In this document: piece by piece, positions 3,143 through 63,805 of the stretch
Numbering within the stretch: position 1 is the first letter of the stretch
How the letters are laid out: each line of letters begins with the position of its first letter
Sequence record: NC_070967.1
Length of the DNA stretch: 64,000 nucleotides
Direction: 5' to 3' (one strand)
Position numbers and translations under genes: made by a program
The notes under the pieces: generated by a model
The model's input: only the letters and a program-made list of their open reading frames with translations
The model's database searches: none
Told to the model about the DNA's origin: nothing

Positions 3143-4073
3143 ATGGTGAATAAGATGTTTCAAGACAACGTATCAAAGGTCCTCAAGCCTTCCTCTGAGT
3201 GGAGCGTTCTGAAGAACGTTACTGTTATGGATCCTGATGGATGGGATCGTCAGAACTTCGAGATCAGTTGGGATGAATTGATCTCTGAGGAAGAATTTGA
3301 TCGACGTGCAATGAGGTCAACTGTACTCTTTGTTAGGAAAGACGATGTTCAATCTGACATTAGCTAAATTTGTACTCGAAGCTCATAAGTCTGACAAAGA
3401 TATTACTAGTCGTAATGGATACGGTGGATACAATATCCACAAGGAGTCTTATGGATTTCTTCAGAAGATTGAGAAGAAGTTCGGAGCTAAGAGTGTAGCT
3501 GATCTCGAACGAATGATCAAGAAAGAAGAGACCAGACGTAAGACTCCTGTACCAGATCCTAATCCGATCTACAAGAATCAGCGTGCTCGGTATCGTCTTC
3601 TCAGAGACTATCTTGGAAATAGTTCAGACCTGAATGTTTACATCAGCAGCCAGGAATGGGACGTACATAACTATTTAGGTCAAGGATGGGTTGAGAAATT
3701 TAAGAGTGATTCCATTCTCCACCGTTGGTGCTGGAATGTGATGAAGCTCCAGTTTGATCTCGATGCTTTGATCATTAAGGTACGTACTCATTCTAATGTT
3801 GTAGGCTTCGAGAAAACTAATGAAGAGAATGATATCACCTGGACCGAGTTCGTCCTAGGTGAGCAAGCTCTCGATAAGTATATTGAAGTCCTAGAGATCC
3901 GTGCTAATCGTAAAGCTGAACGTGAGTACGAAGAGCATCAAGAATATCTTCGTCGTCTAGCTATTGAAGACTGGAAACGTGAACAGTTAGCTAAGATTCG
4001 TCTCGTACAGATCAGAGACGATGTCAAGGACAAATCTCGAGCTGACAAAAGGAAGAGGAGAGTAGCAGTATGA
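3143..4073 (+). CDS. Two hypothetical CDS (3143-3367, 3345-4073)
   Basis: Tight packing; the second has a charged, coiled-coil-like C-terminus. Confidence 0.65.
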
Positions 4074-4762
4074 CTAAGATTCGACATATTTCTTTCGACG
4101 TATGGAATACTCTAGTAATTCCTAATCCAGATTATGCCAGAGCACGATCCATGTACCTTGGTAAGGTATTCAATATGGTCTCGGAGGATGCTGCTAAGCT
4201 CTATTCGAGAGTTAAGAAATGGATCGATGAACTTGCTGTTCAGACTGGTATGGGTCCTGATGCTGAGAGCAATGTACTCATGCTTCTGAATATGGCTGAT
4301 CGTTATGCAGATCCTCAGGAGATCCTCATTAACTTTGAGAATCTTTTCTTCAAGTATCCTCCGATTATTCATCATGCAGTACGTGATGGACTTCGTGCAC
4401 TGAAGCATCATGGATATACGTTCTCTATCGCTAGCAATAGCAATTTCATATCTGGCAGAACGATGACTAAGTTCATTCATGCTGAATTTGGATGCATGGC
4501 TTATGAAGTTTACTCTGATCTCGAAGGTTATGCTAAGCCTCATCTCAGATTCTTTGAAGAAGTATTTCATGGTGCGAGGTTACAAGGTCTCGCAGACTAC
4601 TCGAGTGAAATTCTACATGTCGGAGATCACGAGATCTGTGATGTGAAGGGTGCAAACGACTACGGATTTAAGTCATTACTTTTCACCAATCCTGAAGATA
4701 TGTCCAAAGTTATTAAGAGAGTCCAGCAAAATGAACAACCACCAAGTGTATTATGCGCATAA
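4070..4762 (+). CDS. HAD-superfamily hydrolase
   Basis: Motif I FDVWNTL, motif II ASNS, AKP lysine, motif IV HVGDHEICD. Confidence 0.9.
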   Translation: MTKIRHISFDVWNTLVIPNPDYARARSMYLGKVFNMVSEDAAKLYSRVKKWIDELAVQTGMGPDAESNVLMLLNMADRYADPQEILINFENLFFKYPPIIHHAVRDGLRALKHHGYTFSIASNSNFISGRTMTKFIHAEFGCMAYEVYSDLEGYAKPHLRFFEEVFHGARLQGLADYSSEILHVGDHEICDVKGANDYGFKSLLFTNPEDMSKVIKRVQQNEQPPSVLCA

Positions 4763-7937: not shown

Positions 7938-8729
7938 ATGAATAATCCTTTCAGCAAATCCATGATGGATCGTATGTTCAAGCAGGTCGACGGTGTCGTC
8001 TGGGATCTGATGTCTGGTTCGAAGATCGGCATCAAGACGAAGGAAGGTATCGCTACCGTCGATCTCAATCTCGAAGAAGAGACTGTATCAGTAGCTCCTG
8101 TCAAGACGACTCGTCGTAAGGCAGGTGCAGAACCTGTAGCTCCTCTCGCTATTCCGACTCCGTCTCCGATCATGGAAGCTCCGGATGCTCAGGTCTCGAT
8201 CAATCTGTTCGATGACTTCGGTATGGCTCTGCCTGCATTCGCTCAGTCGACTCCTGTCGAGGCTATCGGTCTCGGTGATATGATCTGGAACTCTGCTCAG
8301 AATCGTGTCATGGGATGGGTCGTCAAGGTCAGTCCCAATCGTAAGAGCTTCAAGGTCCTCAAGACGGATGGTACTCGTAGCGAGTGGTCTCCTCCGAAGG
8401 TCAATGTACTCGGATTCGAGACTGGTACGATGGTCGTACGTTCTCTGATCAACATGCTTCCTGGTGGAGCTACTGGTCAGAATGGTCTGGAAGGCATGCA
8501 GTCGTCTCTCGGTCAGATGCTCATGATGTCGTCCATGATGGGTGGCAGTGAAGGTGACTCTGAGAACATGCTCAAGGACATCATGCCGATGATGCTCATG
8601 TCGCAGATGGGCATCGGTGGTGCTCAAGGTGGTATGGGTCAGATGATGCAGACCATGATGATGATGAAAATGATGGGTGGTATGAATCGCGGTAGCGGTG
8701 GTACCAAGCGTAGTTTTTTCGACAACTAA
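7938..8729 (+). CDS. Protein with Met/Gly-rich low-complexity C-terminal tail
   Basis: SD AAGGAG; tail GGMGQMMQTMMMMKMMGG; ends ...KRSFFDN* across a slippery site. Confidence 0.85.
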   Translation: MNNPFSKSMMDRMFKQVDGVVWDLMSGSKIGIKTKEGIATVDLNLEEETVSVAPVKTTRRKAGAEPVAPLAIPTPSPIMEAPDAQVSINLFDDFGMALPAFAQSTPVEAIGLGDMIWNSAQNRVMGWVVKVSPNRKSFKVLKTDGTRSEWSPPKVNVLGFETGTMVVRSLINMLPGGATGQNGLEGMQSSLGQMLMMSSMMGGSEGDSENMLKDIMPMMLMSQMGIGGAQGGMGQMMQTMMMMKMMGGMNRGSGGTKRSFFDN

Positions 8730-8790
8730 GCTCTGATTCTGGAGAGGATGGATCTCGGATTAGACTCCGAGATCTGTCTTCGGAGCTTAG
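8714..8790 (+). promoter_or_regulatory. Candidate programmed -1 ribosomal frameshift signal
   Basis: In-frame heptamer T TTT TTC (8714-8720), spacer GACAA, then hairpin 8726-8790 (about 11 bp outer and 14 bp inner stem, loop TTAGAC). Confidence 0.7.
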
Positions 8791-9157
8791 ACATCTCCGT
8801 ATCGTAGGAGAGACATATAGATCACGGTATGCACAGAATGTGTATCGTGATGTTAAAGAAAATGATCCAGTCATCCTCGAATGGGAGAAGACCAATCGTA
8901 TGGATGGATGTGCTCATAAGGTCTTCGTCTACGATCCAATGAATGAACGAGGTACCCATGTAGGGTATATCGATCGAAATCAAGCAGCTAGGATTGTTAG
9001 TGAACTTGCCAAGTATAAATACACTGAGAAGACTCATCGTATTGTTGGTAAGATCACGAGAGACAATCCTGGTAAGTACAACGAAATCGAGATACTAGGA
9101 CTCATCAGCACTACAGAGTCTGAACAGCATCTCAAAGATTATTATAGAAGGAAATAA
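8714..9157 (+). CDS. HIRAN-domain module, probably expressed as the -1 frameshift extension of 7938-8729
   Basis: -1 frame open from 8714: LRIVGETYR...VKENDPVILEWEKTNRMDGCAHKV...HVGYIDRNQAARI matches the HIRAN pattern; the ORF-track start GTG 8840 cuts off the first HIRAN strand. Confidence 0.7.
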   Translation, partial: FFRQLSSDSGEDGSRIRLRDLSSELRHLRIVGETYRSRYAQNVYRDVKENDPVILEWEKTNRMDGCAHKVFVYDPMNERGTHVGYIDRNQAARIVSELAKYKYTEKTHRIVGKITRDNPGKYNEIEILGLISTTESEQHLKDYYRRK

Positions 9158-9161
9158 CCAC

Positions 9162-10085
9162 ATGGGTGGCGGACGTTTTGATACTAATGCATATGCAAGC
9201 CTGTCGACTGCTCGTACAGTTCGTACTGACGGTACCCGTATGCATCACACTGAAGTCTTCAGGGCTAAGGTCGTGGATAGCAAGTTCTCTCCTCGTAGCA
9301 TCAAGGTACGTGAGTCGGTTGACTCGGAGACATCTCCGAATTCTCGTCCGATCATCGTCGGTCTTGACTTCAGTGGATCGATGGGATCGATTGCAGGTGA
9401 GATGGCTAACAATCAGCTTGGTAAGCTGATGGAGAATGTCGTTGGTACGAAGGCAGTAGCTGATCCTCATCTGCTGTTCCTCGGTATCGATGACGTTCAT
9501 GCATCCTTCTCGTCTGAATCTCTTCAGGCTACTCAGTTCGAAGCTGATATTCGTATCGCTGAACAGCTGACTGAACTGAAGAATATCGGTCGAGGTGGAG
9601 GTAATGGATTCGAATCCTACAATCTCGCATGGTACTTCGCTGCATACAAGACGAAGATCGACTCCTTCAAGAAGCGTGGTAAGAAGGGACTCCTCTTCAC
9701 TATCGGCGATGAAGGTGTACCTGCAGATCTGAATGCATCTCATCTTGAGACTGTCTTCGGATCAGGTGATCTTCCTGTTCTCAGCAACGATACTCTCCTG
9801 AGCACTGTTCGTCAGGAATGGGATGTATTCCACATCATTGCTGAGGAAGGTGACTACTGCAGAAATGGTAGTAGCCATGTCAGCAGGCAGTGGTATGGTC
9901 TCCTCGGCAATCGTGCTATTCTGATGAGCGACTATCGCTACGTCTCGGATATCATCGTTGCTACGATCGCTGTCAATGAAGGTCGTGATCCGGATGATCT
10001 CCTGTCTTCTTACGAGGACAAGGAAGCTCGTAAGGTTATCGAGCGTGCACTCTACGGTATGCGAGATTTCGCTAAGTCTCTGTAA
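9162..10085 (+). CDS. vWA-domain protein
   Basis: MIDAS-like IIVGLDFSGSMG, GGGGNGFESY, LFTIGDE; N-terminal MGGGRF. Confidence 0.85.
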   Translation: MGGGRFDTNAYASLSTARTVRTDGTRMHHTEVFRAKVVDSKFSPRSIKVRESVDSETSPNSRPIIVGLDFSGSMGSIAGEMANNQLGKLMENVVGTKAVADPHLLFLGIDDVHASFSSESLQATQFEADIRIAEQLTELKNIGRGGGNGFESYNLAWYFAAYKTKIDSFKKRGKKGLLFTIGDEGVPADLNASHLETVFGSGDLPVLSNDTLLSTVRQEWDVFHIIAEEGDYCRNGSSHVSRQWYGLLGNRAILMSDYRYVSDIIVATIAVNEGRDPDDLLSSYEDKEARKVIERALYGMRDFAKSL

Positions 10086-10185: not shown

Positions 10186-11436
10186 ATGAAGAATGCTCAT
10201 ATCGTTATTGGTGCACAATACGGAGATGAAGGCAAGGGTGCCACTGTGAATCTCCTTGCTCAGAAATATCCAGATGCATTGAATGTCCGATTCAATGGTG
10301 GAGCTCAAGCAGGACATACTGTGACACTTGAGGATGGTCGTCGTCACGTATTCTCTCACTTTGGATCAGGTACTCTCCAAGGACTGGATACGTATTTCAA
10401 CGAGTCCTCCATCGTGAATCCTTGGAGATTCAAGGATGAGCATACTGTAATCATGAGTGAATTCGGTCTGAGTCCTCTTGTTTTTGTACATGAGAATGCT
10501 CTGGTCACATCGCCTTACGATATGGCAATCAATCAACTCTGGGAGACTTGCCGTAGTGGAGATCGTCATGGATCCTGCGGTATGGGTATTTATGAGACAA
10601 TCCTGAGATCTCGTAAGCCTGAATCTCTTGTACGAGTCCATGAACTAGTTTATCATGTATTTGAAGACATCAATGATCGGTACAAAGAATATGCGTATCG
10701 TAGACTTCAGGATGTCAGGGATTTTCATCCTGATTGTGAAGAGTTCATTAAGGATACTGAGAAATTTATTGATAGTGAAGATGTTACTCGTCAGTTCTTT
10801 CTTGACTACTCATTCTTCATGTCAATGATTAATGTCGTTAAAGACGATATTAATATCTATCCGCAGTACGATACTGTGATCTTCGAAGGAGCTCAAGGTC
10901 TCCAACTCGACCAGAATTATGTTGAGTATCTAGGTAATCTGCCTCATGCTACTCCATCCAATCCTGGACTAGGTAACAAGTCACTCCACGATGCATTCGA
11001 GAAGTATGGTCTCACTGAAGACCATATTCACGTGTACTATCTGACGAGATTCTATCAGACTCGTCACGGTAATGGACCATTCGATCGTGAGGTTAATCCT
11101 GACGCTCTAGGCGACATTGTTGATCTCACCAATATCGACAATCCTCATCAAGGATCGATTCGGTATGCTCCACTCAATGTCTTTAGTCTACTCGAAGCAG
11201 TACTGTTCGATCTTCAGTATATCGATAACTGCAGACCTTATCTGGTGGTCACATGTGTTGACCAAATTGTCAACGATGAAGTTGTCATCAAAGCACTGCA
11301 TGATGACAGTCACGTTAAGATTCCATTCGAGGATTTGAAGATGATCCTACGTGATAACTTTGAACTCATGTACGGCATCTTCTACTCTGATGGAAAGTCT
11401 ATGAAGTACGAGGAACATCTTTATGACGCAGCATAA
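10186..11436 (+). CDS. purA: Adenylosuccinate synthetase-like protein (divergent PurA family)
   Basis: GAQYGDEGKG, RFNGGAQAGHTV, IFEGAQG, TRHGNGPF; the canonical GTT-x-GIGP loop is replaced by GSCGMGIYET. Confidence 0.85.
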   Translation: MKNAHIVIGAQYGDEGKGATVNLLAQKYPDALNVRFNGGAQAGHTVTLEDGRRHVFSHFGSGTLQGLDTYFNESSIVNPWRFKDEHTVIMSEFGLSPLVFVHENALVTSPYDMAINQLWETCRSGDRHGSCGMGIYETILRSRKPESLVRVHELVYHVFEDINDRYKEYAYRRLQDVRDFHPDCEEFIKDTEKFIDSEDVTRQFFLDYSFFMSMINVVKDDINIYPQYDTVIFEGAQGLQLDQNYVEYLGNLPHATPSNPGLGNKSLHDAFEKYGLTEDHIHVYYLTRFYQTRHGNGPFDREVNPDALGDIVDLTNIDNPHQGSIRYAPLNVFSLLEAVLFDLQYIDNCRPYLVVTCVDQIVNDEVVIKALHDDSHVKIPFEDLKMILRDNFELMYGIFYSDGKSMKYEEHLYDAA

Positions 11437-26356: not shown

Positions 26357-26960
26357 ATGTCAGGTAGTGTGTTCGTATTTAAAGCAGGAGTCAAGGAATT
26401 CGAGAGTCTGTGCGAGCAGATGGAAACTCAGGATGTTGACTTCGTCGTCCGTGTCGATATCAATCAGAACAAGACTCTGCTTGTTGATGATCTGATCATC
26501 GCTCACCTTGTAGGTGAGGAATCTCACATCTACCTTAACATCTGAGGAGACGGTCATGGCACTTGGTCATACGATCTTCGAGTACTCTGCATTTGTACTC
26601 GAGAGAAACAAGATGAAACTCTCGAATGTAGATCTTGCGACTACACTTCAGCAGATTTACTATACGGATCTGACTGTCTACGGATACACTGGAGTTCTGC
26701 TCAAGGACGAGAATGAGAAGGATGTCATTATCCACGATATCATTCTCCAGGATGAGCAGTCGTTCTTCAATCACACAGGATATGTCCGACTTCCTGAACT
26801 ACTCTCAAAATATCACAGTCTCTTGAATAAGACAATTGGACATGATTTCGTCAAGTTGCATTATCGAGACGGAAGATGGTATGATCCTGCTGAGCTTACA
26901 AGCATGCCAGGATACGTTGATGGCGCTCTACTGGAGCATCTGAGAAAATGTGACTATTAA
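26357..26960 (+). CDS. Two hypothetical CDS (26357-26545, 26556-26960)
   Basis: SD-preceded ATGs; followed by a terminator. Confidence 0.7.
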
Positions 26961-26964
26961 CGCT

Positions 26965-27008
26965 ATGCCGTATCTGGGATGAGGGTCCTAGGTACGGCAT
27001 TTATTTTT
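26965..27008 (+). terminator. Intrinsic terminator
   Basis: ATGCCGTATCTGGGAT-GAGG-GTCCTAGGTACGGCAT followed by TTATTTTT. Confidence 0.8.
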
Positions 27009-35180: not shown

Positions 35181-35942
35181 ATGCGTAAGTATAATATTGC
35201 ACTGGCAGCTGCATACTCGCTCTCTGCCGTACTCTTTTCCTCAACTGCATCTGCTGCCACATGTGGTGGTCAGGCATGGTCCTGGGAATCCTTCCTGAGT
35301 GGAGCATGTAAGTCTACAGGAGTCTCCAATCCTGGAGATAACAAGCCTCAGCCTGGAGTACGTGGATCAGTACGTACTGTCTCGAGTGGATTCGCTCCTT
35401 CGAATGGATCATCTCCGTCGACATCTCCATCGACTGGCGTCTCTGATCCTGGTACCGATAATCCTGGTGACAATCATGGCAATCCTGGAGATGATAATCC
35501 TGGTCACGAGAATCCAGGTGATGATACTCCTGGTGGCGATGATCATGGAAATGATAATCCCGGACATGACAATCCGGGTGGTGATCACAATGACGATGGT
35601 CACAACGATAATGGCGACAATGGTAACCATGACAACGACGATAATGGGAACCATAACGATGACGACAATGGTCACAATAATGATCATGGAGATCATGATG
35701 GTGACAATGACTCTGGCAACAATGGTCATAACAATGATCATGACGGTCCATCTGGTGATCATAACAATGATGGTCATAACGACAATGGCCAGGATAATGG
35801 TCACAATCAGGATCAGTCTGGTAACGACGATAATGGCGGCGATCAGCCTTCTAATAATGAAGGCTCGAACAGTGATCACGACAACGATCACAACGACAAT
35901 GGTCATGGTAATGATGGTAAGGGACCAGGCAAAGGTAAGTAG
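35181..35942 (+). CDS. Secreted low-complexity Asp/Asn/Gly/His-rich protein
   Basis: Signal peptide ...LFSSTASA; repeated NPG(D/H)D and DGHN(D/N) units. Confidence 0.85.
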   Translation: MRKYNIALAAAYSLSAVLFSSTASAATCGGQAWSWESFLSGACKSTGVSNPGDNKPQPGVRGSVRTVSSGFAPSNGSSPSTSPSTGVSDPGTDNPGDNHGNPGDDNPGHENPGDDTPGGDDHGNDNPGHDNPGGDHNDDGHNDNGDNGNHDNDDNGNHNDDDNGHNNDHGDHDGDNDSGNNGHNNDHDGPSGDHNNDGHNDNGQDNGHNQDQSGNDDNGGDQPSNNEGSNSDHDNDHNDNGHGNDGKGPGKGK

Positions 35943-35959
35943 TACCTGAGTCCGATGAT

Positions 35960-35997
35960 GTGGGAGGTATCAGAAATGGTATCTCCCACTTTTATTT
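35960..35997 (+). terminator. Intrinsic terminator
   Basis: GTGGGAGGTATCA-GAAA-TGGTATCTCCCAC followed by TTTATTTT. Confidence 0.85.
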
Positions 35998-36011
35998 TGT
36001 CTGGAGGTCAT

Positions 36012-44591: not shown

Positions 44592-44610
44592 CGAATTTAC
44601 CTCGAGGAGA

Positions 44611-44647
44611 TAGGTTCACTTAGCCTCCTCGAGGGATTCTTCTTTAG
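44611..44647 (+). promoter_or_regulatory. Promoter-like cassette, copy 10
   Basis: TAGGTTCACTT-N12-GGATTCTTCTTTAG; hairpin AGAGG/CCTCT; SD AAGGAG. Confidence 0.8.
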
Positions 44648-44688
44648 AGGGTCCGGATCGTCTGGGTCCTCTGGAAAAGGAGAATCGT

Positions 44689-45571
44689 ATGTCAATGGCT
44701 GTGTCTCTGTATCGTGCTAAGTATTCTAGCAAGTTCGCAGGATCTGGTGAGTTCCCGATCTATGCTTTGAACCTGAAGGATGCTGAGGATCGTGCTGAGA
44801 AGATCTTCTTCCTCATGAATGTGAAGGTCGATGGTGATACCTTCACATCTGAAGTCGCTCTGGTTGAATTCTGAGGAGAACGATCTTGTACATTAATGGT
44901 TGGATGACCAATGTCAATGTGAGTGAGATTGCTCAGACCAAGAAGTTCATCGAGGAGAACGATGGTCTCGATCTCAAGGTCGATACGACTGGTGCTAATG
45001 GTCCTGAGTACAAGTGGACCCAGTACTGCGATGACGATGAGGACATGGTCAAGATCGCTGCGGTCATGATGTTCTACAACGATCGTAGTCCTGAGCAGAT
45101 CGAGGAGTTCAAATCTGATCTCCGTGAACTGATGAAGAAATACGAGAGGATCTAAGATGCTGAGTTCAGTCGAGAAGAATATCGTCGACAACTACCGTCA
45201 CCTGTACGGTAGGACCTACGGATCGATGCCTCCTGCTCTCCTGACAGATGAGAGGATCTGGGAGATCTACGACAAGGAGATAGGTGTGATGCCTACTGGT
45301 CAGATCCAGGATGAGGAAGTCCTGATGTCAATGCGAGAGGATCTGAATCTGGATGCAAGTCGTCCTGATCTCGGATGGAAGCCTATCGCTAAGAAGACTC
45401 GACTTTCTAGAAAGGGATCATCCAATGTCTAAAGATTTCTTTGGAGATGGTCTTGTAGCAGATGAGATGCGTTCTCGATACGGTAGCGTATGGGACAATC
45501 TTCCATCTGTCCTCAAGACATCCATCATCGCAGGACTGATCATCGGCATCTGTGCAGGATTGATCAGCTAA
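44689..45571 (+). CDS. Four small CDS (44689-44874, 44886-45155, 45157-45432, 45425-45571 membrane)
   Basis: SD sites; ends at a terminator. Confidence 0.65.
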
Positions 45572-45578
45572 CAACTAT

Positions 45579-45614
45579 GGGTAGTATGCCGAGAGGTATG
45601 CTACCCTATTTTTA
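45579..45614 (+). terminator. Intrinsic terminator
   Basis: GGGTAGTATGCC-GAGA-GGTATGCTACCC followed by TATTTTT. Confidence 0.8.
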
Positions 45615-62729: not shown

Positions 62730-63805
62730 ATGAAACTCGCTGCTCTTGTTCTGCTTTCAGTTGGTCTCGGTTGGTACTTGATGGGTTCGACTCAGTCGGA
62801 TGCAATCAATAAGTGCCTTCAGAAGTTCTCTGAATCGACGTGCATTAATCAATACCGTTAAGTTCACTCCATCAAAAGAGGGGAATCAAGATGGTAATGT
62901 TCGGTGTATCGAAAGATCCCATCGTACGTAAAGGATTTGAGGTACTGGCTCATCAAGCTGGTACCTCAGCAGCAAGAGATAATGAGCAGAGGGTAGTACC
63001 TGATCCGTGGATAGGTTTTGAGGACCACTGGAAATCTGGATACGACTCCTTTGTTAAAGGAGTTATGAGTTACGACTTCCTTCGACGTACGTAACTGGTG
63101 AATTGTCTGGGATACTTGCTTAGGTAGGTATCCCAGATTACTTGTTTCTAGACTAACTCTGAGGATCGTAAGATCCGATGAGGGATGCATTATTATTACA
63201 CGGACCCCTCCCTTGGAGATTGTTAATGACTAAGACATATGAGACTCGAGAGATTAGTCCAGGTCAATCTGTATCTGTTGACAAGGCTAAGTTTACATTC
63301 TACAAGGAATCAGGAAAGTATTACACAGAGGGTGAGGGTATTGCTCCATTGTACTCTCATTATGACAACTCTCGTGAAGCTCTCATGAAGTTGAATGGAG
63401 GTAAGATGCCAGGACTCAGTGGTCCAGGAAATGATTTCTATCTTGTAATCTATCCTCTCAATGACGAGAGCGATATTGTCCCACGTTTACTGAAACCAGG
63501 AGAGTAGTATGAGTGACGTGCGTCTTCAGGAATTGGATGAGATAGTTGAAGTTTCTCGTCAATCGAACACTCTGGATATCACATATCCAGTTTCACATAT
63601 TCTGAGATACTATCATGAAGACTCAGATAAATATGATGTGGATCAGATGCTCGAGATCTTCAACAAATGGCTTGATAGTTATCTGCGCACTCATATAAAT
63701 TCTGAAATGCACATACTCTCGATTGATGCTATTCTTGTGAAATTCTTTGAAGATCACAAGGTAGAATTTCCATCGTACCTCATTTCTAACAAGGACCTTG
63801 ACTAG
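62730..63805 (+). CDS. Small CDS (62730-62861 secreted/membrane, not in the track; 62891-63094; 63226-63507; 63509-63805)
   Basis: SD sites; FYKESGKYY motif in 63226-63507. Confidence 0.6.

Follow-up and report, generated by a model that had tools for sequence, protein, structure and literature searches.

The window analyzed here comprises the first 64 kb of the genome of Rhizobium phage RHph_Y65 (NC_070967.1). No tRNA genes were found in the window. The locus that is the subject of this study contains gp016, an open reading frame annotated as gp017, and gp018 (Table 1). The gene neighbors of gp016 are a phosphoribosyltransferase-like gene, an NMN adenylyltransferase/NUDIX gene, the gene of a vWA protein, and the gene of a PurZ-type synthetase. 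In several phages, PurZ adjoins the pair formed by a gp016-family gene and a vWA gene.

Table 1. Genes and sequence elements of the gp016–gp018 locus of phage RHph_Y65.
Feature	Position (nt)	Strand	Basis
gp016 (PQC17_gp016), 0-frame product, 263 aa	7938..8729	+	
Slippery heptamer T TTT TTC in the X XXY YYZ register, on the Phe-Phe codon pair of the conserved aromatic tip	8714..8720	+	
Predicted frameshift-stimulating stem-loop, 5 nt 3' of the heptamer	8726..8790	+	
ORF of the -1 frame, open from the heptamer, 147 codons and a stop; linker of ~30 residues, then HIRAN	8714..9157	+	
Pfam HIRAN match inside the -1 ORF	8807-9040	+	
gp017 according to GenBank/RefSeq, GTG start, 105 aa	8840..9157	+	
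gp018, vWA domain protein with a MIDAS-type D-x-S-G-S motif	9162..10085	+	

The N-terminal domain of the gp016 protein is beta-rich and is followed by a helical tail, rich in Met and Gly, and by an aromatic C-terminal tip, both tail and tip being conserved. The protein is a member of a large family of roughly 400 or more proteins, which is found only in phages. The tip motif, Phe-Phe or Pro-Phe, is present throughout this family, including those members that lack HIRAN. Searches of Pfam, PHROG, NCBIfam, and PDB with gp016 gave no match, and a search of BFVD retrieved only uncharacterized phage proteins. The assignment of gp016 as an SSB-like protein, whose tail would be disordered and whose tip would serve for docking, is unsupported, as no PDB match was obtained either by profile or by fold (best E 0.18). 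Neither could gp016 be assigned as a tail assembly chaperone of the G/GT type, as it is not placed between tail tube and tape-measure genes, its neighbors being of the metabolic type, and it matches no chaperone of PHROG or Pfam.

The usual downstream neighbor of a gp016-family gene is a vWA/MIDAS gene, represented in RHph_Y65 by gp018. The gp018 protein has no match in Pfam or NCBIfam. Its AlphaFold model (pLDDT 91, pTM 0.90) shows a Rossmann-like vWA fold and was matched by Foldseek, with a probability of 1.00, to integrin I-like domains, the vWA domains of Ku80 and Rpn10, and the MIDAS domain of RGLG1, and its metal-site motif reads D-F-S-G-S. The representative of its UniRef cluster, a 96% identical protein of phage RHph_TM39, bears the name 'VWA domain-containing protein'. 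Probably, gp018 acts together with gp016.

The 0-frame ORF of gp016 ends with CGT AGT TTT TTC GAC AAC TAA, and a check of this sequence bore out the in-register T TTT TTC heptamer to which the initial annotation had drawn attention. The hairpin that had been placed 5 nt past the heptamer, with stems of about 11 and 14 bp, was recovered by folding as a two-part structure of 65 nt. Its outer stem of 11 bp (8726-8736 paired with 8780-8790) encloses a 9-nt internal loop on the 5' side (8737-8745) and an inner stem of 14 bp (8746-8759 paired with 8766-8779), which is closed by an apical loop of 6 nt (8760-8765). The TAA stop codon of the 0 frame (8727-8729) sits within the outer stem. The fold energy of the hairpin is -41.3 kcal/mol (z -4.3), none of 200 shuffled sequences was equally stable, and in a ranking of 6392 80-nt segments of the plus strand of the 64-kb window the hairpin is the third most stable. 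In canonical -1 cassettes, the stable structure begins about 5-9 nt past the heptamer, and the 5-nt spacer of RHph_Y65 falls within this range.

The -1 frame had been described as open from the heptamer, directly after a TAG codon, and it is: TAG 8711-8713 closes it just 5' of the heptamer, and the next stop of this frame is at 9155-9157. The absence of ATG and GTG from the -1 frame before position 8840, which had been noted earlier, was likewise confirmed and extends to TTG, the first of these three codons being GTG 8840. This GTG is not preceded by a Shine-Dalgarno (SD) sequence, and its pairing with the anti-SD sequence is the weakest of those of 10 neighboring starts (-3.0 vs. -4.0 to -8.5 kcal/mol). 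The Pfam HIRAN profile (PF08797, cut-off 24.7 bits) aligns with residues 32-109 of the -1 peptide through its positions 6-76, with a score of 35.2 bits, while its match to the version that starts at GTG 8840 begins only at profile position 17 and scores 30.8 bits. The latter indicates that HIRAN starts upstream of 8840, in agreement with the earlier proposal that its first strand lies 5' of this codon, and that the annotation of gp017 truncates the beginning of the domain. PHROG 8026 matches the -1 peptide from residue 28, and both the first-strand and the central HIRAN motifs are common to this domain and its relatives. A PDB sequence search with the HIRAN piece gave noise only. The product sizes that had been derived from the two frames, 263 aa and about 406 aa, are arithmetically correct, although they remain predictions without protein data.

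All eight Cuauhnahuacvirus phages have kept the cassette. Four representative genomes show a single change among them, located in the loop, and 10 of 10 database records encode an intact -1 peptide. These data bear on the possibility that the two ORFs are really one gene, or the remains of a decayed one, and that their separation reflects a sequencing error, a pseudogene, or transcriptional slippage on the T-run. A site of six T, such as that of RHph_Y65, is prone both to indel errors and to polymerase slippage. However, the ten records, which represent 8 phages isolated independently, have an identical run, the HIRAN ORF is conserved and uninterrupted, and the heptamer of most lineages other than the Y65 type is the non-homopolymeric C CCT TTC. 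Moreover, no in-frame fusion of gp016 and HIRAN was found among the 24 lineages described below or among the 120 best family matches. An artifact or a polymerase-level event of this kind is scarcely credible.

Two further lineages, L010 and L012, are only 40-50% identical in HIRAN, yet they carry the same heptamer in register. It is followed in both by the same spacer of 5-6 nt and by the same two-part stem-loop, built from a different sequence (z -4.5 and -4.7). The codon that precedes the tip codons in RHph_Y65, L010, and L012 encodes Ser, Asp, or Pro and always ends with T.

The HIRAN subfamily encoded in the -1 frame is too divergent to be traced alone, as the searches with it gave little or nothing. 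The HIRAN piece by itself and an alignment of HIRAN from three lineages found nothing in IMG/VR, the alignment retrieved only L010 again from JGI metagenomes and only two clusters from a set of 5.8 billion proteins, and a search of all representatives with HIRAN yielded 5 matches. The lineages were found by searching with the upstream gp016 protein family rather than with HIRAN. A scan of bacterial genomes revealed only 4 short MAG contigs, one of them with the cassette. The survey set comprised 24 non-redundant gp016-family loci with a HIRAN ORF and 27 loci without HIRAN. The cassette is thus present in at least 24 divergent lineages, which include jumbo phages of 230-360 kb, Ralstonia phage RP13, and Roseobacter phage RDJL3. 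Pfam HIRAN was confirmed in the extensions of RP13, RDJL3, and several uncultivated phages, with E values down to 1.8e-12.

In all 24 loci, the HIRAN ORF is in the -1 frame relative to the gp016 homolog, while none of these ORFs occupies the 0 or +1 frame and no in-frame fusion occurs. Within the last five codons of the homolog, 23 of the loci have a heptamer of the X XXY YYZ type in register, the remaining one carrying T CCT TTT instead of a canonical heptamer, as compared with 3 of the 27 HIRAN-less loci (Fisher p = 3e-10), in which its occurrence is due to chance. The heptamers in use are five (T TTT TTC, C CCT TTC, C CCT TTT, G GGT TTT, and G GGT TTC), and such a variety, as far as sequences can tell, argues for ribosomal slippage over slippage on a homopolymer. 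Stem sequences are unrelated between lineages. When examined on one fixed structure, covariation is only moderate: 72% of cells are paired, as compared with 31-47% when the controls are slid, and the 5 sequences show 5 double-sided changes. RNAalifold applied to MAFFT alignments recovered the outer stem only, or nothing, because the helices differ in length and register. The homologous loci, to which the initial annotation had pointed as a check on its proposal, show a recurrent heptamer, spacer, and stem-loop in nearly all cases where HIRAN is encoded, and no in-frame fusions.

In phage mRNAs, long and imperfect hairpins between genes commonly serve as sites of processing. The stem-loop could, in principle, serve RNase III-type processing, stabilize the mRNA, or act as an attenuator, and lie close to the heptamer by coincidence. 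A second, comparable hairpin is located inside gp018 (9428-9505) without any frameshift context, and the hairpin of the gp016 locus matches no Rfam family, both of which are compatible with such a role. Nevertheless, the distance between heptamer and hairpin is 4-7 nt in most HIRAN lineages, and the hairpin is present only where the -1 HIRAN ORF follows. For the 80 nt downstream, the median fold energy is -36.3 kcal/mol in HIRAN loci vs. -12.2 in HIRAN-less loci (p = 5e-9), and the median z is -3.7 vs. +0.15 (p = 3e-7). Furthermore, much of the hairpin lies within the coding sequence of the -1 frame. A function as a terminator was rejected in view of the absence of a T-tract and of a terminator call. 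We regard a role of the stem-loop that is unconnected with the heptamer as extremely unlikely.

The region between the heptamer and HIRAN provides evidence of another kind. In the linker 5' of the first start codon, the ratio of synonymous to non-synonymous changes is 41/102 in the -1 frame vs. 25/121 and 13/133 in the others, and stops are absent from the -1 frame, as compared with 1-4. By these measures, the linker is a sequence that evolves as coding in the -1 frame. Eight lineages have no ATG, GTG, or TTG between the heptamer and the first HIRAN strand. In the case of phage RDJL3, the first ATG splits a zinc-finger domain that precedes HIRAN.

It has to be considered whether HIRAN is produced only as a separate protein, from a weak or non-canonical internal start (ATT 8759, CTG 8774, or, in a truncated form, GTG 8840), perhaps by re-initiation after TAA 8727, in which case the heptamer would merely result from the Phe-Phe tip. 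ATT 8759, at the edge of the apical loop, is located 10 nt past the SD-like GGAGAGGA (anti-SD pairing of -8.2 kcal/mol), and an in-frame ATT or ATA is present in the apical loop of RHph_Y65, L012, and L010. However, the SD-like element is not conserved, and the candidate starts are buried in a helix of -41 kcal/mol. CTG 8774 aligns with the ATG that lies ahead of HIRAN in L010, but L012 has CTA at this position. As to the tip, it is a protein motif that is conserved even in the absence of HIRAN, and the heptamer is therefore, as judged from this pattern, partly kept for protein reasons. What such a constraint leaves unexplained is the base before the tip codons, which does not change even though the residue does (Ser, Asp, Pro), and the choice of codons in the Pro-Phe tips, which are almost always written C CCT TTY in loci with HIRAN and contain CCG, CCA, or CCC in loci without it. 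Separate synthesis would also leave unexplained the location of the HIRAN ORF in the -1 frame in every one of the surveyed lineages, despite many linker indels, and the coding character of the linker from the heptamer onwards. Taken as the only way of producing HIRAN, it is very unlikely.

Several lineages, however, have a canonical start with a fair SD sequence ahead of HIRAN (ATG in L010 and RP13, GTG in L015, TTG in L048), and in these a free HIRAN protein may also be produced. Homologs with a conventional start for a stand-alone HIRAN gene, and without a conserved slippery site, had been named as an observation that would refute frameshifting. Homologs with a conventional ATG for HIRAN do exist (L010 and RP13), but they retain the heptamer and the hairpin, and their -1 frame is open. 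Therefore, they do not refute the frameshift and only leave room for an additional, independent initiation in those lineages.

The proposal that a programmed -1 frameshift at T TTT TTC adds HIRAN to a fraction of gp016, so that two isoforms arise at a ratio set by the RNA, is strongly supported by the occurrence of the same arrangement in 24 non-redundant loci, though without proof at the protein level, and we consider it highly probable. What has been observed is the signal, its conservation, and the fact that the linker is coding, while the slippage itself and its efficiency are inferred; the efficiency could be low, as there is no evidence from proteins or ribosome profiling. According to the proposed mechanism, the 65-nt stem-loop would sit at the mRNA entry channel when the ribosome is positioned on the heptamer. 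Most ribosomes would stay in frame and stop at TAA, giving the shorter protein. A fraction would move back by one base at the pair of Phe codons and translate the -1 frame as far as 9157, giving a product composed of the whole gp016 body, the linker, and a C-terminal HIRAN, and the RNA signal would set the ratio of the two isoforms. HIRAN domains bind 3'-OH single-stranded DNA ends, as established for HLTF. On this ground, it can be inferred that, through the long isoform, a minority of the gp016 subunits would be anchored to 3' ends of DNA.

The HIRAN fusion had been regarded as an unusual feature of an accessory module. While the frameshift part of this view is supported, the arrangement is not peculiar to one module. 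The surveyed lineages show it to be an old trait, shared across the family, of a conserved pair of genes composed of a gp016-family gene and its vWA/MIDAS partner. It is tempting to speculate that the two proteins form a DNA-end-handling assembly, in which the basic-aromatic tip of gp016 docks on the vWA protein and the frameshift sets the stoichiometry of the subunits equipped with a HIRAN arm for 3' ends. This would make gp016 an ancient, family-wide recoded gene of phage DNA metabolism, of a breadth similar to that of the tail-chaperone frameshift. The vWA domain of Ku80, at which short peptide motifs dock, may serve as a model of the proposed docking. Such an assembly would possibly be linked to the replication or protection of modified-base genomes, as suggested by the proximity of PurZ to the gene pair. 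We put this forward only tentatively and consider it doubtful. The inferred connection of the uncharacterized gp016 family and its vWA partner with DNA ends offers a concrete handle on their function.

In every public record inspected (RHph_Y65 and three relatives, RP13, and RDJL3), the two ORFs are annotated separately. The annotated start of the HIRAN gene falls inside the domain in the records of the Y65 group and inside the preceding zinc-finger domain in that of RDJL3. The annotation of these records and the domain inventories based on them are therefore incorrect. The natural cassettes, with their five heptamers and many unrelated stem-loops, constitute a comparative data set on bacterial -1 frameshift signals.

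A search of the literature revealed no HIRAN domain reached by ribosomal frameshifting and no description of the gp016 family. HIRAN proteins known so far, such as HLTF and the stand-alone proteins matching PF08797, either stand alone or are joined in frame to modules of the helicase, nuclease, or RING type. The extension of gp016 resembles them in scoring above the curated threshold but would be attached via a frameshift. The OrfA/OrfAB system of IS3-family elements (IS911 type) is similar in that a downstream structure stimulates a -1 slip, by which a small upstream protein is joined to a functional domain that lacks an efficient start of its own. However, its product is a transposase of a mobile element, while the gp016 locus contains neither inverted repeats nor transposase domains. 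In the case of E. coli dnaX (tau/gamma), the similarities concern the heptamer, the spacer of about 5-6 nt, and the stable stem-loop, as well as the production, at a set ratio, of a protein of DNA metabolism in two isoforms distinguished by their C-terminal domains. Frameshifting yields the shorter product in dnaX and would yield the longer one in gp016, and dnaX frameshifting is stimulated also by an upstream SD-like element, a conserved counterpart of which was not found for gp016. The G/GT system of phage lambda shares with gp016 the X XXY YYZ heptamer for a -1 slip, located a few codons ahead of the point where the upstream ORF terminates, and the minor, C-terminally extended isoform made at a fixed ratio. 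Like the equivalents of G/GT in other tailed phages, it also shares the conservation of the signal across widely diverged proteins and the avoidance of in-frame fusions. The gp016 system differs from it in the gene family, in its non-structural function near genes of nucleotide and DNA metabolism, in HIRAN as the appended domain, and in the very stable stem-loop that follows the heptamer and is conserved wherever the extension exists. As predicted from sequence comparisons, gp016 uses a -1 programmed frameshift of the classical type, in a gene family that is new, conserved, and unannotated, and this frameshift would represent a second broadly conserved recoding event in phage biology, located outside structural genes.

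The sequence analyzed here is identical to bases 1-64000 of the genome of Rhizobium phage RHph_Y65 (Acc. No. NC_070967 / MN988525), a 206.8-kb phage of the Cuauhnahuacvirus genus (Kleczkowskaviridae). Results of our analysis indicate that the expression of its gp016 gene very probably involves a classical -1 programmed ribosomal frameshift: ribosomes slipping at the gp016 shift site would produce an isoform of about 406 aa, ending with a HIRAN domain, beside the 263 aa isoform. The shift signal and its conservation are observed directly, while the slippage and its efficiency are inferred, with no protein-level data. The genes surrounding gp016 and gp017 include a phosphoribosyltransferase-like gene, an NMN adenylyltransferase/NUDIX gene, gp018, and the gene of a PurZ-type adenylosuccinate synthetase. 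This is an early region of nucleotide and DNA metabolism rather than a tail module, and none of its genes was judged broken (breaks = 0). The PurZ-type synthetase suggests a genome with 2-aminoadenine; a gp016-family gene paired with a vWA gene is likewise found near PurZ in Vibrio phage pv27 and one metagenome contig (L009).

Features of the gp016-gp018 region of RHph_Y65
Feature	Position	Strand	Description
gp016	7938-8729	+	'hypothetical protein' in the record
TAG closing the -1 frame upstream	8711-8713		
Slippery heptamer T TTT TTC	8714-8720		
Open -1 frame	8714-9157		147 codons
Two-part stem-loop	8726-8790	+	-41.3 kcal/mol, z -4.3
0-frame ORF within the hairpin	8748-8807	+	19 codons from ATG
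gp017 (annotated)	8840-9157	+	'hypothetical protein' in the record
gp018	9162-10085	+	predicted vWA domain with MIDAS-type motif
Hairpin within gp018	9428-9505	+	-37.7 kcal/mol, z -5.2
PurZ-type adenylosuccinate synthetase	10186-11436	+	

All elements that the initial annotation had read from the sequence alone, namely the heptamer, the hairpin, the open -1 frame, the HIRAN domain, and its late start, were confirmed. The 0-frame ORF ends with CGT AGT TTT TTC GAC AAC TAA, in which the heptamer is in the correct X XXY YYZ register, and the -1 frame is open directly after its upstream stop codon. The stem-loop begins 5 nt 3' of the heptamer and ranks third in stability among 6392 80-nt windows of the + strand. 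Its 11-bp outer stem is separated by a 9-nt internal loop from the 14-bp inner stem, which is capped by a 6-nt loop. The stem-loop matched no Rfam family, and no terminator-like character was found in it. The shape of five other most stable + strand 80-nt folds (44601-44680, 63061-63140, 45531-45610, 35921-36000, and 26921-27000) resembles tandem hairpins of terminators or intergenic elements. The short ORF that starts inside the hairpin, just 3' of the gp016 stop codon, is probably meaningless. The earliest ATG, GTG, or TTG codon of the -1 frame is the annotated GTG of gp017, whose anti-Shine-Dalgarno pairing is the weakest among ten neighbouring starts. The Pfam HIRAN match covers residues 32-109 of the -1 peptide, from profile position 6, and a protein started at this GTG lacks profile positions 6-16.

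The same layout is present in all eight Cuauhnahuacvirus phages (93-100% identity across 3.5 kb). Four representative genomes differ at eight positions of the 261-nt junction region, only one of which falls in the cassette of heptamer, spacer, and stem-loop, namely in the apical loop, and the -1 peptide is intact from the heptamer onwards in 10 of 10 records. The cassette and the intact -1 peptide across these relatives exclude a one-off sequencing error. The segment 8400-8800 is the least variable of the region (1-2 variable columns per 200 nt vs. a mean of about 22), in part because Met residues are encoded by a single codon. The second very stable hairpin, within the gp018 coding region, has no frameshift context; in the 91 aligned nt around it (9420-9510), the four genomes differ at two positions, both in one genome.

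Conservation of the heptamer, spacer, and hairpin in homologous loci extends to two divergent lineages whose HIRAN belongs to the subfamily seen in RHph_Y65: a JGI metagenome contig (L010), with a gp016 homologue of 60% identity, and an ENA contig (L012), with a HIRAN of about 40% identity. Upstream ORFs of both end with an in-register T TTT TTC, preceded by a codon for Asp or Pro instead of Ser but with its final T retained, and the HIRAN ORF occupies the -1 frame, open from the heptamer. A two-part stem-loop of like architecture and different sequence starts 6 nt downstream (-37.7 and -38.1 kcal/mol, z -4.7 and -4.5). As in RHph_Y65, no canonical start precedes the first HIRAN strand in L012, while in L010 an ATG does, buried in the inner stem.

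The gp016 family has over 400 metagenomic members, about 225 aa long and lacking any Pfam domain; conserved among them are an N-terminal domain, a Met-rich region, and the aromatic tip at the C terminus. A search of IMG/VR with the family alignment yielded 49 loci, to which GenBank phages and metagenome contigs were added. At each locus, the homologue was extended to its stop codon, and in-register heptamers, the -1 frame length, and the folding of the following 80 nt were scored; a six-frame scan was done with a profile of the extensions. A HIRAN-like ORF follows the gp016 homologue at 28 loci (24 non-redundant), always in the -1 frame, as proposed for the single locus; the scan of these loci found no HIRAN in the 0 or +1 frame or fused in frame. 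As the profile was made from -1 peptides, it matches them by construction, and the informative part is the lack of matches in other frames and loci. Pfam confirmed HIRAN in Ralstonia phage RP13 (1.8e-12), Roseobacter phage RDJL3 (1.6e-10), and several uncultivated phages. One MAG contig provided an additional case of the HIRAN cassette. In a rough tree of N-terminal domains, HIRAN-bearing members occur on both deep and shallow branches, which indicates that the extension is old and was repeatedly lost or gained, always together with the cassette.

An in-register heptamer lies within the last five codons at 23 of 24 loci with HIRAN and at 3 of 27 without it (Fisher p = 3e-10); the remaining HIRAN locus carries T CCT TTT. 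Five heptamers were seen (T TTT TTC, C CCT TTC, C CCT TTT, G GGT TTT, and G GGT TTC). Transcriptional slippage, a sequencing error, or a pseudogene can hardly be upheld, being incompatible with the non-homopolymer heptamers and with ten concordant records. The Pro-Phe tip is encoded by C CCT TTY where HIRAN is present, and with CCG, CCA, or CCC in HIRAN-less tips. The next 80 nt fold more stably at HIRAN loci (median -36.3 vs. -12.2 kcal/mol, Mann-Whitney p = 5e-9; z -3.7 vs. +0.15, p = 3e-7), with the stem onset mostly 4-7 nt past the heptamer and the 0-frame stop usually inside the stem. That the hairpin has another function and is near the heptamer by coincidence is very improbable, as it leaves unexplained the tight association of hairpin, heptamer, and -1 ORF. 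Taken singly, every lineage forms a stable helix at a suitable distance from the heptamer, although a single consensus is hard to impose: RNAalifold on MAFFT alignments gives the outer stem only, or nothing. For a fixed structure in five gap-free sequences, 72% of cells are paired, as compared with 31-47% in slid controls, and five changes are double-sided, so that the support is real but modest. No upstream SD-like element proved to be conserved. At three IMG/VR loci (L034, L036, and L037; about 2097-2345), A AAA AAG at the extreme end of the gp016 homologue is followed by an 82-codon non-HIRAN -1 ORF with ATG as its eighth codon and a weak fold (-5.8 kcal/mol); this ORF is probably merely the overlapping next gene.

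To judge from substitutions in four gap-free relatives, the linker that runs from the 0-frame stop to the earliest start codon is translated in the -1 frame. Differences at third positions of this frame number 106 vs. 76 and 67 at the other positions, the share of synonymous codon changes is the highest in this frame (synonymous/non-synonymous 41/102 vs. 25/121 and 13/133 in the other frames), and stops are absent vs. 1-4 in the others. Across lineages, the linker length ranges between about 30 and about 160 residues, with differences that are always multiples of three nucleotides. A conventional SD/ATG start of a stand-alone HIRAN gene, which together with the lack of a conserved slippery site was regarded in the initial annotation as evidence against frameshifting, is not absent from all lineages: eight lineages have no ATG, GTG, or TTG ahead of the domain, while RP13, L010, and two further loci (L015 and L048) have a start with a fair SD, and free HIRAN protein may be an extra product there. 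In RDJL3 (3573-4385), the 270-codon -1 extension contains a DnaJ-type CXXCXGXG zinc finger followed by HIRAN, and the first ATG, which is the annotated one, splits the finger. The synthesis of HIRAN solely by internal initiation seems unlikely, since it explains neither the frame conservation nor the codon choices.

In the gp016 model, the N-terminal domain is beta-rich (core pLDDT about 90), and the Met-rich tail forms three helices. Neither the sequence profile nor the fold of gp016 matched any PDB entry, and its BFVD matches are uncharacterised phage proteins only. Residues ~45-80 of RHph_Y65 gp016 (8035-8140) form a Pro/Ala/Val-rich insertion of about 35 residues relative to all other aligned family members. 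The HIRAN domain of HLTF binds to DNA 3' ends; by inference from this role, the long isoform would tether gp016 to DNA 3' ends. Another link of the family to DNA is the N-terminal topoisomerase-type C4 zinc finger (PF01396) of P0049, a 302 aa member encoded on a 22-kb Logan contig. The vWA assignment of gp018 rests on its model (pLDDT 91), for which Foldseek found integrin I-like domains and vWA domains of Ku80, Rpn10, and RGLG1. A gp018 homologue is downstream of the gp016-family gene at 42 of 57 loci, whether or not HIRAN lies in between.

None of the inspected GenBank/RefSeq records joins the two ORFs, full-text literature searches found no description of a HIRAN frameshift or of the gp016 family, and there is no mention of HIRAN in the PRFect paper. 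These findings are relevant to those working on recoding and phage annotation. The proposed mechanism is the same as that of lambda G/GT, dnaX, and the IS3-family frameshifts; new here are the gene family, the domain added to it, and a conservation this broad beyond structural genes.
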